The translations under genes and the position numbers were made by a program. DNA of 64,000 nt from positions 648,365 through 712,364 of the forward strand of contig NW_003314319.1 in assembly GCF_000143415.4 (NCBI RefSeq). Reading direction: 5' to 3'. Positions 4,244-47,143 of the stretch are shown piece after piece (positions within the stretch are counted from its first letter, which is position 1; every line of letters begins with the position of its first letter). The notes beneath the pieces are model-generated. The model did no database searches, was not told the DNA's origin, and saw nothing but the letters and a program-made list of their open reading frames with translations. The DNA comes from Selaginella moellendorffii. Its lineage: Eukaryota > Plantae > Lycopodiophyta.

Positions 4244-7200
4244 TCAGTAGAAAGCTCGGCCACCTTCACTCGTGATCGCGCTCTCTCTCGCAAGCGCCTC
4301 CGTGATGCTCTGTGGCTGCAGGCGAGGCTTCGACGGGAACACAAACAGCTGCGTGTTGCTTGCCGGTGGCTGGTAACTGGCGCTGAAGTTCACGAGAGTG
4401 AGCATCACCTGCGGGAGCTGCTGCATCCCACACGCAATCGGCACCAGCTTGAGCGGCAGTGATTCCGTCGACGAAGGCAGCAGTGAAATGGAGCCTCGGG
4501 ATGCGCCTGACACCAGAAAGCTCTGGGCGTCCACCACCGAGAACTTCACCTCCTGAACAGTGTTCGTCCGGTTCTGGATGCGAAACGACAGCGTGAAAGG
4601 AGTGCCGAGGAGGCCATACGGTGGATACTGCAGCGACACTACTACGGGAGCCTTCTCGACGGCGATGACCGGCAGTGCTAACCGTGTGGTCACAGAGCTC
4701 TGGAGAATGCCCGTAGCATCTGTGCTCGAAGGTGAAGCCATAATCTCGTCTATGCCGGAAACCTCCACCACCTCGGGTTCCTGTCGCTGCTGTTCTCTTT
4801 CCCACCTCAGAGCCACGGTGCCAATGTCGAGAGATGATGATACAGCCAGAGGTCGTATAGATAAAATCTGATTGAAGACCTCGCCGGGTAAGAGCTTGGT
4901 AGCCTCGCTTGACTGACTGATAGCGCTGTTCCTGAGACGGCTCCCTTCCATTCGTCTTACTTGACACGTTCTGGCATTCTTCTCCTCGACCTGGACTGGA
5001 GAGATGAGAAGTGGCACGGAGCAGATGTTTCTNNNNNNNNNNNNNNNNNNNNNNNNNNNNNNNNNNNNNNNNNNNNNNNNNNNNNNNNNNNNNNNNNNNN
5101 NNNNNNNNNNNNNNNNNNNNNNNNNNNNNNNNTTTCATCAAAAGGTAGGACGGTTCCAGCAGATCTCTCGACGCTGCCTGGAAGAAACGCGTCTCTCTGA
5201 AACGGAACCATGTACCTACAGTTGATTCTCAGAGCCTCCTCGCATTGTAAGTCGACGTGTTTATGACTCCACAGCTTATGAGTGTCGTCGTTGGTTCCAA
5301 ACTGTATCTGGTATCCCAATGTAACAAAAAAGGAGACTGGTTTCGCTTCTGTAAACCGTAAGTACGTGGAGGTCGACCAGCTTCCATCTGCTTCGACGTA
5401 AGGTATCTTCATGGACCCCTGAAACTCCCATAGAAGCGTCTCACCACTTCCATCTTTCAATCGAGCTGGTACGAATATCTTAGCACACGCAGCAGAGGAG
5501 CCTGTGGAAGGTGTTTTCGGCGAAAAGGCATCGTTGGAAGCGACCTCAGTCACGGACACTTGCAATTCTCCGGCGTCGATAGCATGCCCCCTGGACCTGA
5601 TGTGTATTCTAACTAAAACCGTTTCCCCGAGTAAGCCTGTGCCTCCTGAGTCGATTTCTATATCAACCTTGGGTTCCACCTCTTCCACCTGTACAACCTT
5701 CTGTCCTAGAAAAGCCAAGTTCTTATCCTTCACGGGGTAACTCTCGAGCGCTGGCTCAAACTGCCAAAACGGATCCGGTTCTCTAGAAGCCGGGCTCTCC
5801 ACTTGACAGCGAACGGTGGTGTTGCGTCCTAGTCGTGCAACAGCGAACAGACACTCTAGTTTCCCGCTTTTTACTGCAACAAGCAGAAAAACATCACAAC
5901 CGATAATTTTTCGAGAGAGATATTGTACCTGCAATTATATCAACTTCCAGTCGTTTCCACTGATGCGGCATAAGTTTCAGATCGCAGCCCTGGTCCAGAG
6001 AATGCTTGAGAGCAAGATTACAAGCATTCTGGTTGAAGTGTATCTCCAAGTCACCAAGTTCCAACGGATGCGGTAAATGAGTGAGCAGGGAAACTGTCAA
6101 GCGTGTTGACATACCCGGTTTCACCGCCTGCTCGTGGAAGGCAACGCAAACTGATAAAACTCCCCTGAGAGGACTGACGAGGTCGATCTCCAAAGCAATT
6201 GGAGCTTCACCATCTGGCAGTGCATCAGTCCCTGTAATAGCCGCAATGACGTCTGTCAGTGCAGTACTTCTTCTCGCCACCTCTGACCAGCTTTCCTCCG
6301 GCAATGCCGCCAGCTCTAAACTGTACTCCAGAAACTCTTTAGAGAGTCCGAGATGTTTAGCCGTTTCACGCAGATATTCCAGGCTCGCGGCGAGAAGCTC
6401 AACCCATGCCTCCTTTCTGTACATTTCGGCGACGGTGTCGAATAGCCGTTTTGCATTCTCATGTTCGCCCGCATGAAAGTATTCGCGGCCCATTTGCGTT
6501 CCAAGATAGTAAATCATCCGGGTCGCTTGCGTGGCTTTGTACTGTTCGTGAGCCTTGGTCAACAAATTTATTGCAGCTCGCGAATGAGGAAATTGTCTTT
6601 CCGTCAGCATCGCATGTCTCATGTATTCGTCGGGTGTAGCACTGCAATGGCATATGTAAGAGCCTGAAACAAGAGCGACGCGAATAGTTACCTCTGTTCT
6701 TCTGACATTCTGCTTAGAACACGAGGACCTTGTCCGACGTAGAGGGGCGGACCAACTTCTTCTGGAGGACCAGCTAGAACGTCCACTGCATCTGGATTAT
6801 CAAACGACTCGAAAGTTGCAAACGCTCTCTCAAAGGTTCGTCTTCGTCCAGCCATATACGAAGCAGCTATCTGCAACGTTCACTTTTTTTCAGACCACGA
6901 TGAACGAGAAAACATGAAATACCTGGTAGTAAAAGCCCGGCTGTAATTCCCGCTCAGTTACACCCGATCCGGCCAGCACAGCGGTAGATGTTGGAGCTGT
7001 AGAACGGCCAGTCTTCAAAAGATCTCCGAAAACGTGGTGCTGCTGGCCGACCCATGCCCAGTGCATAAAAATGCCTTCTGGAGGTCCAGAAAGCTTCTTG
7101 AAACTAGCAATGTGATGCTTAAACCACTTCACGGCCTCAACTTCCTTCCCACTGTGGAGCAGTAAAGTTGAGACTTTGAAATGCAACTGCTCTGCCACGG

Positions 7201-29617: not shown

Positions 29618-30217
29618 ATGGCGTTAGCAGCGACTTCGTCAGTTCCTCCAGCGCTGGGAATTTGCGCTACTTCTTTCCAGATCTCTGCCAGGGGCAATAG
29701 CGATTCCTCGCTCGGTAGCTCCAGCCTCGTCTTCGTCTATGGGACGCTCAAGAAAGGATTTGGGAACGAGTGGCTCATGCAGGAGCTCGTGAGCCAGCAG
29801 CACGCCTGCTTCGTGTCCGCCGCCACCACCAAGCTCGAATTCCCGCTCGTCTGCGGCCCATTCCAGGTGCCTTTCCTTCTCAATTTCCCCTGCCAAGGCC
29901 ACCGCGTCCGCGGCGAAGTCTATCTCGTAGACCAAGCTGGTCTTCGCAGGCTCGACGAGCTCGAGGGCCTCGGCAAGGGCCACTACGAGCGCCGATCCAT
30001 TCTCGTCGAGGGCCTGGAACGAAGTTTAGCTCAGTCCCAAGCTGTGAATGCCGAGGCTTACTTTGCAGGATCCAGTTACGCAGTGGAAATGTTGGGAGCT
30101 CCACACTTGCCAAGCTACAGCACCGTCGAGGCGGAGAATTATGTTCCGCGGAGGAACCGGCCGCCGGGTATCACGTTTTTGGAACACGTCCAAGCATGGA
30201 TCGCTGCTAAAAAATGA
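29618..30217 (+). CDS. Gamma-glutamylcyclotransferase (AIG2-like) with probable transit peptide
   Basis: VFVYGTLKKGF.N, FPLVCGP.QVPFLLN, VRGEVY and LDELEG. Confidence 0.9.
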   Translation: MALAATSSVPPALGICATSFQISARGNSDSSLGSSSLVFVYGTLKKGFGNEWLMQELVSQQHACFVSAATTKLEFPLVCGPFQVPFLLNFPCQGHRVRGEVYLVDQAGLRRLDELEGLGKGHYERRSILVEGLERSLAQSQAVNAEAYFAGSSYAVEMLGAPHLPSYSTVEAENYVPRRNRPPGITFLEHVQAWIAAKK

Positions 30218-39443: not shown

Positions 39444-41743
39444 CTATATCTCTATCTCCTCGAGAATGGCTGCCGTGTGATTGAAACCACAGGAGACGTG
39501 AAGCGCCGAAAGCCGATCATCCATCTCGATTGGAACAGGCTCGAAAAAATCAAAATCGGTCCCAACTCCCTGGAAAAAGCACGAAGACCTTTCGATATTT
39601 TCACGAAGAACTTTGGAACTTTGGAGAAACTTACGAGCTGGCCGCCGCTTGATTCTGCTTGCGTTGCGTAAGTTCCATATGATCCTCCCCATCCCCAGCT
39701 AAAAATGTAGCCATCTACACTCGCGAGGGATACATTGTTCCTTAGAGCTTTCATCAAGTTTCTAGCTTGGGTTTTGCTTACCGCTTATAGCTGCTGTGTG
39801 CTTCCATCCACACGATATCTAAAACACGGAATCACGCAACAGTAAGATTTGTTAGAGTGAAATGCGATAGATACCTCTGACATGAATGCCTCGGCCAAGC
39901 TTTCCAAACGCAGTGGCTTGCTACTCGCACGAAATCTGATAAAAACTTGAGACTTTCTGGCAATGAAAGCTTTTCTGTGTGCCTACCCAGAGCCCAGGCA
40001 GCCATGCTCGTTAGATCCCCACGTATAAATGTCGCCGTCCTCTAAAACACAAGAGAAAAGATAGTGAGGATGAAACGAGCGTTTTCTTCTTACGAGTTAT
40101 AGCACCGGTGTGATAGCCTCCGCACGAAATGGAAGAGACGCGAGGAAGATCTGGAATTGGACATGGCTGTGACGCATCGTTGTTGTTGCCAAGGCCCTGC
40201 ATAAATATCACACCTTGAGTGAAAGGAAAAGGGAGAAAGACAAAAAGAAAAGAAGAAAAGAAACTTTAGCACACACACACTATCCCAAGCAACTACGTGA
40301 CTGGCGCCGCCTTCTTGGTTGTTGATCTAAGATTCAAGCAGGTTCGTCATCTTCACCTAAGAAATTCATCAGAGATTGAGATCTCAAGACCTCTCCTCTA
40401 AGCTAAGAAGAAACTGACGAGACGACCATACCAGCTGACACATCGAGCCTTGGCCAAACGAGTAAATCGTTCCACTGTCTGTGGAGAAAATAAAAACATT
40501 GAAATAAAGAAAGATTTGCACACATCACCTCCTTACCATCCGCACACGCAGAGTGCACTAGTCCGGCCGAAACGCTACGAACCTGCACGAAAAGAAAAAT
40601 AAATGTCTACTTAGTGAATACGCAAAGCACGAATTTCACCTGGAGCTTTTCTAGACAGTGGATTATCCTTGGAGTGTACTCACTGTGAAGTACGAGATTA
40701 TAGACGTAAGCAACAAACACACCACTTACTTTGTATCTTTAAAGAAGTCAAAGAATCCCGTCATCTCGCCGTGTCCAAGGCAACCAAATCTATTGGTTCC
40801 CCAGCTCAGAACTTGGCCAGTTTCTGGAAAAATAAACAACAAGACAACAAACATCACCATTTGTCATATGTTTCTTCCCTTCATACCCGCAAGTCCAAGT
40901 GAATGGTCCGTTCCCAGAGCCAGAGCCTTCAAGCGCATTCCGGCCAAGGATTCCATCTTCTGCGGAGTGATGTAAACCGACTTAGCACCTGTAACAAGCA
41001 AGAGCTTGCAACGATTGGGAGAAAAGAAAACACTACACTTACGTTTGCCGAGTCCCAGCTGACCTTCGCTGTTTCTTCCCCAGACATAAGTCTCGCCACT
41101 TGCTGCATAGACACAAGTCACAAACGATTCAGCAAAGCGAAAAGGGAAAGAGAACAGAGAGATCACAAAGAACATGCAAGACAATCCAGCTAGAGATTTT
41201 ATACAAGTGATGGCAGCAGAATGGTACCGTCCAGCTGCAATATGTACACAAGGATCAGGAAACCCATGCACCTCCACAGGATCCTACACCAAAAATCACG
41301 TAGAATGAACGCTCCCAAGTAGAAAAAAGGAAGAAACTTACAAAGCTAGATTCGCTCTTCAATGGAACTCCAAGCTGACCGCTACTGTTCAATCCAGTTG
41401 CAAACACACGTCCCTTGTCTGCAAATACCATCCAAAGTAGCGAAGAGAAAAATCCATGGAAACGAGAGGAAAAGACCAACATACCAGTGAGGATGAGTGT
41501 GTGAGCACCACCGCAAGAGACAGAGCAAGGCTCGTGAGATTCCAGCGCTCGGCACAAAACTGGCTCGAATTGAGAGCCCGACTCGCTGAGGCCGAGCCTG
41601 CCTTGATCGCCATTTCCCCACAGCGCCACCCATCTTTTTCCAGCCTTGCCCGAGACCTCCACTTTGTTCTTGGCTGTGAGACCATACGCCCTTCGCCGCT
41701 TGATGACCGAGCGCATCCATAGCTGCAATCTGGAAGGACCCAT
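39444..41743 (-). CDS. RCC1/UVR8-like repeat protein (RUG-type, probably organellar), multi-exon
   Basis: ALWGNGDQGRLG, SCGGAHT, GLNSSGQLG, AAGRYHS, WGRNSEGQLG, SWGWGGSYGT..ESSGGQL and VSCGFNHTAA. Confidence 0.9.
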
Positions 41744-41871
41744 CGCTACTAGAGCAAGCGGAGACCTAGCAAAAAATGCGAAGTACAAAAGAAAGTACTA
41801 CCTTTAAAAGCGTGAAGATGAGAGCTAGAAAAGAGAGCCACCATTTCATTCATTAGAGACGAAAAGGTACT

Positions 41872-43610
<1,739 letters not shown>

Positions 43611-43929
43611 GAATCTGGAGCTCCAGCGCCCAACCCTGGAATCGCAGCCCTGGTCCAAAACTTCCCGTTTGAGGTAAAACGAAGAATGCACGAGGCCTCT
43701 CTTGAGAATCGAAAGCATCGTGCCTAGAATCGGATTAATTAGCGAGTAAAGAATTCTATTACCTTCGAGCGCGTGTGAAACTCGTCAAAGAAAAACCCTA
43801 GATAAAAACAGAGGATACGGGTTTAGGGTTTATACAAACTATTATTGTTATCTTTGTTATTTGCTATTTATCTTACTCTTTGTTATTATATATTAACAAA
43901 GATATGATATGTATGACATGTTTTCTTCT

Positions 43930-44270
43930 TTAGTTCCCTTTAGAAACTTTGGGGATGGATCTTGGAGTAGGGCCTGGCCTGGGACGATACCTCCGCTGTG
44001 GAATAGGATCCACATCCTCATAGTCGGTCTATCAAAAATCTCACAACCAAAGGTTCCAGCAATCAAATTATCAGTGATGATAATTATAATCTCATCACTC
44101 ACCTTCCTCCAGTGTGCCAGTGCCAAACTACTTGCTTTTTTTTGGGCAAAACCATAGCCTTGTTAGCTACAACCACTTGGATGAAAACACACACACAGTA
44201 AAGTACCTTGGAGCCTTGCTCCTTCACAACACGCGAGTATCACAAGAAGCAAACTTAAAACCTTGATCAT
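43930..44270 (-). CDS. Candidate small secreted sulfotyrosine-peptide precursor (PSY-like), 72 aa, 3 exons
   Basis: Exons 44270-44207, 44158-44103 and 44028-43930 give MIKVLSLLLVILACCEGARLQ|GYGFAQKKASSLALAHWRK|TDYEDVDPIPQRRYRPRPGPTPRSIPKVSKGN*. Confidence 0.6.
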
Positions 44271-44557
44271 CCTCCAATTCGAGCTCCTCGCAAATGAAAA
44301 TCTTCGCACTGAAACCATACTATTTGAGCCAAATCCAGCGATGACGAGGGTGAAGATCACATCCTGGAGGAATCCCCACCAACGATTGAATTGAAAGCCA
44401 CCTTAAAGTTTTTAGAGTGAACACCAGAAACTTCTTTTCGGTGGTACAAAGTCAAGATTCCTGTTATATACACAGTGAAATGTACAAATCGAATGAAACA
44501 ATGTACCTGTGAGGAAGTCCTCCTTCTTTTCCTTTCTTTTCTCTCTCTCTGGTTTAT

Positions 44558-47143
44558 CTAAGTCAGCCCCGCAACTTGTGTGTTCTCTTTTGCGAGCTCG
44601 AAGCTCTTGCGTGCGTCGACTTTGCAGCTCCTGTCAGCAGCGTACATCCGGCGGATCTGCTCTCTGTAAACACTTATCTCGTTGGAAGCTTTGGCTGGAA
44701 CTCGAGCCATGGTGACCAACACCTTGGACCTCTCCTCCTTCTCCACGATCTCCACCACGTCTCCCATCCGGAGCTTCTGGTGAAAGTTCTCCACCTCCTG
44801 ATGGTTTACTCGGGGTGTCATCTCCGAGAGCACGCCTGGATCGAGAAGAAAGTGATCCTCGCCTCTTTCCGTGACGAGGTCGGCAGCAGTGCAACCCGGA
44901 GGAAGCTCTTGAACAATCATCTATGGAGACACACAAGCAAAGTCAGCACAACTTGGAAACTTCAACAAACAAAAAGCTAGATACCTTTTCGTCTTTGAGC
45001 ATGATCACGAACAGTGGATCGTCCTCGCTTTCCGGCGGTCCAGAAAAGGCGTGCCGACAATCGTCCTTGTGGAAAGGAAACGGGCAGGATGACTTCAAGT
45101 CCATATGTGATGGTGAAACTCGTAGCTTGTTGTCCATGATTTCGCTGTGCCAGGTGAGGATCCATCTTGCCCATTCCACCCGTTGCAAAAGGAAAGCGGA
45201 GTGCTTTGTATCGTTTCCTTCCTTGTATCGCCAGTGCGCAGCCATACCGAATTCGGCATGGCTGTGCATTTCTTTCGTTCTTATCTGAACTTCCAAAGGA
45301 AGACCATCCTTGCCGCTTACAACTGTGTGCAATGACTGATACCTGCGAAAGGCGGACTCAGTTCAAAGCTCCAAAACATGAAAGCCAGCCACTTACCCGT
45401 TAGCCTTTGGCTGTTTGATGTAATCCTTTAGTTTTCCTGGAATGTGATCCCAGAGCTTGTGCACAAACTCCAAGGCTTTGTAGCAATCAGCTTCATCTTT
45501 GACAATCAAACGAAGACCTCGGACATCGTATATTTCATCAATACTGCGCCCTTTCCTGCAAATGACCAATGATGAGACGAAATCATAAAGTGCTTTTTGT
45601 CAACTTACTTCTTCATCTTAGTGTAAATGCTGAAAAGAGTTTTAGACCGGCCACAAAGATCTTCGATTTTGATCTTACTTTTACGTAGCGCCTTGTCAAG
45701 CTGCTCAATCGCCGACAGTACCACGCCTCCGCGGCAGCATTCTATCAGTTTGGCAGCAAGTTCCTGATACTCGGTAGGATTTAAGTACTTGAAACACAGG
45801 TCCTCCATCTCTGCTTTCCAGCTCCATATTCCCAGCCTGTTTGCTATGGGTACGAGGATTTCGAGAGTTTCACTGGCGATCCGGTTCTGCTTCTCCGTTG
45901 CCAAAGCTTCCAAAGTTCGCATGTTGTGCAGCCTATCAGCAAGCTTGATCAACACCACACGCACGTCGACCATCGCTAGAAACATTGTCCTGAGACGACC
46001 TGCTTCTAGCGTCTTGCTAGCGATGTTGTTGTCCCTAGCAAGCTGGCTTAGCTGACTTATCTTCGATACCTGTTTAGAACCAAAGTTAGTACCATCGTTC
46101 AAAAACAGTATCAAAACTACATCTTACCCCTACAACAAGGTCAGCGACATCGTCTCCAAAAATGGCACGAATTTGCGCCTCGTCAATGCTTGAATCATCT
46201 AGCGTGTCATGTAGTAAACCAGCGGCAACTACGGTGGCTTCCGCACCAGCCGACGCCAAAAGTATAGCAGTCTCTACGCAGTGAGTCAGGTAAAGTTCTC
46301 CGCTCCGCCTAAACTGCAAGAAAGCAAGCAAGAACACGTAAGAAGATAAGAAGAAGGAAACAAGAAAAGAGAAAAACTTACATGACCGCGATGAGCTTCT
46401 TCGGCCAATCTAAACGCTTTGATTATGAACGGATCCTTGAAAACCTTGTGCCGCCGCTGGGCGTCCACCAAGATCTCATTTGGTGAAGCCTGTTTCGCCG
46501 TTCTGGAATCCGGCACGTCACTAAAGTCAAAGCCCACGAAAGAATTACCGCCATTATGTACAAGGAAATCCGTGAGCGCTGCTGTCAAGCTCTTGCTCTC
46601 CTCTTGACTAACTTCGAATCCTTCTCTCCTATAAACCGGTGTCCGCGTGTCAGCAGTGGCAATACCTCTACCCCACGAACCAACGTGTGGATCCAGCGGA
46701 GGAAGATCAGCGCAAACAGGAGCTTCGCGCCCGGCCACCGAGAAGATGCAGCTACTGTAAGTGTATGGGCTCTGGATGATCGAGACCGAGCTGCGCTTGC
46801 CAAACGAAGATCCGGGAATGTTAATGCTACCGCTGCGACCATCCTCCCATTTGGGATGATCCACTTGAGAGACGCTCCTCACCGACGATGACAAGCTGCC
46901 CGACTCCAGCGCGTCACTGATCGCGCAAGACGAGTGCTGCCGCGCATTGGGACTGGCGAAGAGGTAGGAGAGGCCGCCGGCCCTTGACTGCCGTGGCCCC
47001 GAGCTCTGCCCGCCCTGGAGCCAGCAAAGATGGGCCTCCGAGTCGCTAGAGACGCCGCTGCTGTGGTGAGTGGAGCAATGGCTGCCGCAAGAAACAGGGG
47101 CCGGAGGGGAGCTGGAGTAGAGCGCCATGGAGCAAACGACCAT
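44558..47143 (-). CDS. RSH: RelA/SpoT homolog, RSH2/RSH3 type ((p)ppGpp synthase)
   Basis: [67 protein letters not shown] and [10 protein letters not shown]. Confidence 0.93.

Follow-up and report, generated by a model that had tools for sequence, protein, structure and literature searches.

We report a candidate small gene, so far unannotated, on the minus strand of Selaginella moellendorffii (44270–43930), whose three exons would together encode a secreted precursor with a signal-peptide-like start, a dibasic pair and a proline-rich tail opening on Asp-Tyr (DY). Judged from its sequence, we put the chances about even that this is a genuine gene for a DY-peptide precursor, with a prepropeptide of 72 aa (88 aa if translation starts at the upstream ATG 44318). 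The pattern of the tail is nearest to that of the CIF/TWS1 peptides, and we describe the product as a putative DY sulfopeptide precursor. All positions refer to the window, by which we mean the whole 64-kb stretch of DNA that was analysed. Annotation routinely overlooks small genes for peptide hormones. The candidate lies in a 947-nt gap between two genes of the same strand (Table 1).

Table 1 Positions of the candidate gene, its splice sites and the flanking features (numbered along the window)
Feature	Position	Strand	Splice score	Percentile	Description
RSH (RelA/SpoT homologue), last exon	44558..44920	-			Upstream neighbour; stop at 44560–44558
Possible N-terminal extension	44271..44318	-			In-frame upstream ATG at 44318 (A at −3, G at +4)
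Exon 1	44207..44270	-			ATG at 44270; 21 codons plus 1 base; MIKVLSLLLVILACCEGARLQ; signal-peptide-like
Intron 1	44159..44206	-			48 nt, GTACTT...AAG; donor moderate, acceptor weak
Donor 1	44206		4.5	93.8th	
Alternative acceptor, TAG	44167		-2.9	~54th	
Acceptor 1, AAG	44159		-2.9	~54th of all AG	
Exon 2	44103..44158	-			56 nt; split Gly codon plus 18 codons, ending His-Trp-Arg-Lys (HWRK), with dibasic Arg-Lys
Intron 2	44029..44102	-			74 nt, GTGAGT...TAG; good donor and acceptor
Donor 2	44102		9.6	99.6th	
Acceptor 2	44029		3.3	90.5th	
Exon 3	43930..44028	-			32 codons from TDYEDVDPIP, then TAA at 43932–43930
Asp-Tyr codons	44020..44025	-			Putative TPST sulfation site and mature N-terminus; DY requirement per PMC7007523
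Very AT-rich 3′ region	43835..43929	-			GC 0.20 (43929–43830); AATAAA-like hexamers
Class-III alcohol dehydrogenase/GSNOR, first coding exon	43571..43610	-			Downstream neighbour; ATG at 43610

An initial annotation of this DNA had proposed a hidden gene of three exons between RSH and GSNOR, and its architecture was reproduced from the sequence: the exons join through GT-AG introns in phases 1 and 0 into 72 codons, and the two neighbours, both on the minus strand, are those it had named. The start of the precursor likewise has the signal-peptide character that had been attributed to it, a call that we based on hydropathy and the −3/−1 rule. Lys3 is followed by a hydrophobic core of 12 residues (Val4–Cys15; 9-residue Kyte-Doolittle mean up to 3.46), and small residues occupy −3 and −1 for cleavage after Cys15 or Gly17. 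By our own criterion for signal-like ATG exons, exon 1 is one of only three in the window. The in-frame ATG at 44318 stands in a better context than that at 44270 and would put 16 basic residues in front of the hydrophobic core. Furthermore, the dibasic Arg-Lys at the end of exon 2 does immediately precede the proline-rich DY tail, in keeping with the original description. Beyond Thr-Asp-Tyr, the tail encoded by exon 3 comprises an acidic stretch, prolines at Tyr+5 and Tyr+7, the blocks RPGPTPR and SIPK, and a terminal KGN.

To place the tail among known families, we compared it by eye with the CIF, TWS1, PSY and RGF peptides listed in Table 1 of PMC11534595, counting positions from the Asp. 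[quoted passage not shown] Two of these three features are present in the candidate, namely the N-terminal Asp-Tyr and the prolines at Tyr+5 and Tyr+7 (positions 7 and 9), so that the Pro-x-Pro spacing is identical to that of CIF1-4 and Asp-Tyr starts the peptide in both. The third feature is absent: where the His/Asn would be expected, ~21–23 residues from the Asp, positions 21–26 of the candidate read P-R-S-I-P-K, the tail holds no His at all, and its sole Asn is the last residue of the precursor, residue 31 from the Asp. Likeness is closest to TWS1 (At5g01075) and CIF4 (At1g28375), ligands of GSO1/GSO2 that are also released from small secreted precursors (76–102 aa in Arabidopsis, 72 aa here). 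The candidate has VDPIP where TWS1 has VDPTP, and six residues on all three carry a PGP block (RPGPTPR in the candidate, KPGPIEH in TWS1, YPGPVPH in CIF4), with PGP followed by x-P-x in both CIF4 (PGPVPH) and the candidate (PGPTPR). Aligned by eye, the candidate and TWS1 share 9 identities over 23 columns with one gap. Against these similarities, the C-terminal His of TWS1 and CIF4 is replaced by Arg, the Gly that follows DY in CIF1-4 is Glu in the candidate, the middle of the candidate peptide is very basic (QRRYRPR), and HMMER, for which so short a peptide is out of range, detects no homology.

The initial annotation had read the tail as that of a divergent PSY-like hormone, and this claim survives in part. 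A secreted DY-peptide precursor is plausible and fits the anatomy, but the assignment to PSY is weak. Every Arabidopsis PSY peptide in Table 1 of PMC11534595 has Asn8 and His11 (DYxxxxxNxxHxP), whereas the candidate has Ile8 and Arg11, which bears out the accompanying remark that the canonical PSY ending is lacking. The closest PSY peptide, PSY5 (At5g53486), is identical at 9 of 21 positions in an ungapped alignment made by eye; the likeness consists of acidic residues after DY, prolines at positions 7 and 9, a subsequent basic stretch resembling RRRPG, and a small precursor. Given Ile8 and Arg11, filing the candidate under PSY is poorly justified, and its Tyr+5 and Tyr+7 prolines together with RPGPTPR suit the CIF definition and the tails of TWS1 and CIF4 no less well. 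The RGF/GLV/CLEL peptides, which are DY peptides of 13 residues ending in His-Asn (Table 1 of PMC11534595), share with the candidate the N-terminal DY and the small secreted precursor, but the candidate has Arg-Tyr at positions 12–13 and a much longer tail. By motif, then, the candidate falls between CIF/TWS1 and PSY and appears to be a full member of neither.

Proline-rich frames that begin with DY can also arise by chance, and we estimated how often. Across the six frames of the window (~128,000 codons), this tail is the only place with an open DY-(3 to 6)-P-x-P motif. In order-3 Markov simulations, the exact CIF spacing (DY-4-PxP) is expected 0.107 times per 64-kb window, falling to 0.0067 when at least five prolines follow, and DY followed by at least six prolines is expected 0.025 times. 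A signal-like ATG exon that can be joined upstream of such a terminal exon (at most 700 nt away, through at most two GT-AG introns of 45–150 nt) has a chance of 0.0015 (20,000 simulations) and was present in 1 of 354 real sequence chunks of the window. Complete models were found in none of 300 simulated windows and not in the reversed window; the real window yielded this one only. Scaled to the ~3,700 windows examined in this genome, the genome-wide chance expectation is ~0.04–0.08 with the proline-rich criterion and 0.6–1.2 with the bare spacing motif; where it falls in this spread (0.04–1.2) depends on the share of the motif that is taken as fixed beforehand. Within a single window the pattern is less frequent than chance would give, but for a scan of the whole genome the margin is modest. 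Since the criteria were chosen with the candidate already known, the simulations offer moderate support rather than proof.

These numbers bear directly on a competing explanation, in which the stretch is simply the RSH 3′UTR followed by the GSNOR promoter, and a signal-like ATG, suitable GT and AG dinucleotides and a proline-rich DY frame happen to coincide once among thousands of windows. We regard this as a serious possibility, though one well short of an even chance. The genome-wide expectation of ~1 for a loosely defined motif speaks for such a coincidence, whereas the far lower expectation under the proline-rich criterion and the lack of any complete model among the simulated windows speak against it. 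Nor does an open frame by itself require an acidic context around DY, a preceding dibasic pair or CIF-type proline spacing, all of which the candidate has.

The splice sites divide the evidence further. As a reference we used the 15 introns of RSH and GSNOR, from which a weight matrix was built; they measure 48–91 nt (median 54) and end in CAG (11), TAG (3) or AAG (1). Both candidate introns (48 and 74 nt) lie within this range and are thus locally typical in length, and three of the four splice sites score well (Table 1), which a chance frame would not lead one to expect. The exception is the first acceptor, which weighs in favour of such a coincidence: the AAG at 44159 has no pyrimidine tract, and both it and the alternative TAG at 44167 score under all 15 true local acceptors (−0.2 to 16.2, leave-one-out). 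An in-frame TAA at 44165–44163 forces the DY frame onto the AAG, just as in-frame TGA and TAG codons at 44034–44029, directly upstream of exon 3, force the second acceptor. The DY frame thus has no freedom in its choice of acceptors, and given the low score of the AAG, the 3′ end of intron 1 is the weak point of the model. The single AAG acceptor of the reference set belongs to GSNOR intron 4 (43101–43162, minus strand; TTTCTTTCTAAG); the genome uses AAG when a pyrimidine tract is present. A weak first acceptor would also be in keeping with a former DY-peptide gene now in decay, its frame still open and its splice signals and expression lost. All three exons are nevertheless open in phase, with neither frameshift nor stop, and we consider such a relic very improbable.

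Base composition and codon usage were evaluated alongside the splice sites. GC content is 0.44, 0.46 and 0.52 in exons 1–3 compared with 0.40 and 0.32 in the introns, and drops to 0.20 in the 100 nt past the stop. With the neighbouring genes as training set, codon log-odds come to −0.17, −0.28 and +0.03 in exons 1–3, and those of known exons range from +0.03 to +0.44. The codon usage of the candidate is not coding-like, as a fortuitous frame would predict; the test is weak on sequences such as signal peptides and proline-rich tails, but it lends the gene no support.

The same 3′ end of intron 1 admits a second alternative, that the locus is transcribed but yields a different product and the DY tail is never translated. 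The initial annotation had cautioned that the DY frame depends on the AAG at 44159, and rightly so: splicing to the TAG at 44167 shifts the frame, which then stays open to 43893 and gives a secreted protein of 87 aa. If intron 1 were retained, the frame would instead end at 44163, giving a cysteine-containing secreted peptide of 35 aa. The signal-like character of exon 1 does not depend on what is spliced to it, the TAG and AAG acceptors score equally, YAG acceptors are the commoner type locally (14 of 15 introns), and the alternative frame, with codon log-odds of 0.015 and 0.069, is marginally above the DY frame. That exon 3 can be read through in two different frames also favours a chance origin for the tail. 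On the other hand, the TAG choice would create an intron of 40 nt, under the local minimum of 48 nt, and no motif, family or relative is recognisable for the alternative product. We hold a product of this other kind to be quite unlikely. Joining exon 1 straight to exon 3 was rejected, the phase mismatch running into a stop.

Searches for annotation and relatives, all of which used single exons or ORFs, returned no counterpart of the candidate. No word-sharing protein was found for the exon-1 ORF among public proteins of 36–114 aa, or for the alternative-frame ORF among those of 42–135 aa, and exon 3 (32 aa) gave no HMMER match at E ≤0.001 among 1.84 billion representatives, peptides so short being beyond the reach of HMMER for relatives. 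An identical exon 3, by contrast, would far exceed this threshold, and the collection holds the S. moellendorffii NCBI proteins, so the gene is unannotated on both haplotypes. Its description as hidden was hence well founded, the product being absent from public protein sets when searched with exon 1, exon 3 and the alternative frame. Pfam, PDB chains and Rfam held no relevant match to the candidate; a degenerate DNA pattern for the nine residues DYEDVDPIP had no match in JGI metagenome contigs; and the tail string was absent from the literature searched. A word search with the last exon of RSH, aimed at orthologous loci, found nothing. That these searches produced no annotation, protein match or relative is also what a chance frame would give. 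A non-coding RNA, repeat or transposon was considered and rejected, with no Rfam match and only a short AT-rich tandem (43842–43893) in the region. The sole match in the ESM Atlas was an 84-aa Streptophyta cluster (0.76 and 0.75, below any useful threshold) with the automatic name ‘Transmembrane protein family protein’. Its length may be set beside the 83 aa of CIF1 and CIF2 in Arabidopsis, but the match is only a lead, not evidence.

If the candidate is a DY-peptide precursor, a pathway of maturation can be outlined. The sequence anatomy is what we observe, and from it we infer every step. The signal peptide of exon 1 would direct the precursor into the secretory pathway and be cleaved after Cys15 or Gly17. 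Tyrosylprotein sulfotransferase (TPST) would sulfate the Tyr of the Asp-Tyr pair in its acidic context (DYEDVD), and the prolines at Tyr+5 and Tyr+7 would likely be hydroxylated. A subtilase-type cut around Arg-Lys/Thr, followed by trimming, would leave Asp-Tyr as the N-terminus. The proline-rich peptide released in this way, ~22–31 residues long, might then be perceived in the apoplast as the ligand of an LRR receptor kinase, which would most likely belong to the GSO/PEPR-related clade. S. moellendorffii possesses TPST and two receptors of the GSO/PEPR clade whose phylogeny is unresolved (PMC8462819). The most specific version of this proposal, a functional lycophyte GSO-clade ligand of CIF/TWS1 type in which a basic residue replaces the C-terminal His/Asn, seems to us unlikely.

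The origin of sulfated DY peptides, and of CIF/TWS1 especially, is disputed. Two BLAST surveys have traced CIF homologues no further back than gymnosperms (PMC11855783, PMC13074997), divergent bryophyte candidates have been proposed from a pattern search (PMC8462819), and Casparian strips occur in lycophytes (PMC11855783). Should the candidate prove to be a GSO-clade ligand of CIF/TWS1 type, CIF-GSO barrier surveillance would extend down to the base of the vascular plants, and the His/Asn anchor would be either not ancestral or not obligatory. Verification of a lycophyte DY peptide with CIF-type proline spacing and no His/Asn end would provide a concrete candidate ligand with which to probe the GSO/PEPR-clade receptors of Selaginella. 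If the locus is not expressed, it would serve as a useful example of how convincing chance look-alikes of peptide precursors can be.

The tightness of the gap weighs against a genuine gene. The candidate ATG lies 287 nt from the RSH stop and the candidate stop 319 nt from the GSNOR ATG, so that promoter and UTRs could be accommodated only by overlap with those of RSH and GSNOR. The stretch directly after the RSH stop (44464–44557, minus strand) opens with a GA-rich tract and continues with TGTA motifs and a TATATAA at 44470–44464. This could be the poly(A) signal region of RSH or else provide the candidate gene with a TATA box; that the TATATAA may simply belong to the RSH poly(A) region suits a chance frame. 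At the other end, the very AT-rich region past the candidate stop may be its 3′UTR and poly(A) region, overlapping the GSNOR promoter. On the GSNOR promoter side, a TATATAA (43892–43886) and a telobox (AAACCCTAA, 43831–43823) lie 210–280 nt upstream of the GSNOR ATG, both within the AT-rich stretch that would double as the candidate 3′UTR. The same stretch (43823–43892 area, minus strand) also holds the tandem at 43842–43893, an imperfect one of 26 nt, and a 13-nt palindrome (43877–43902).

Both neighbouring genes were rebuilt, with 2,274 coding nt for RSH and 1,143 for GSNOR, each a multiple of three. The last RSH intron (44921–44984, minus strand) has two in-phase donor options, giving 64 nt (GTATCT) or 46 nt (GTTGAA), and the 64-nt version was taken as a provisional choice. 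Downstream of GSNOR, ORF fragments with RCC1-like repeats (e.g. GxNxxGQLG) at 40000–41800 (minus strand) suggest a multi-exon gene of the RCC1 family. Elsewhere in the window, the assembly contains a gap of 100 N at 5033–5132, and a single-exon gene at 29618–30217 (plus strand) encodes 199 aa identical to a public protein. The 90% cluster of this protein includes XP_002974012.2, a ‘putative gamma-glutamylcyclotransferase At3g02910’ of S. moellendorffii from a second contig; that contig is evidently the other haplotype, both haplotype scaffolds being present in the public assembly.
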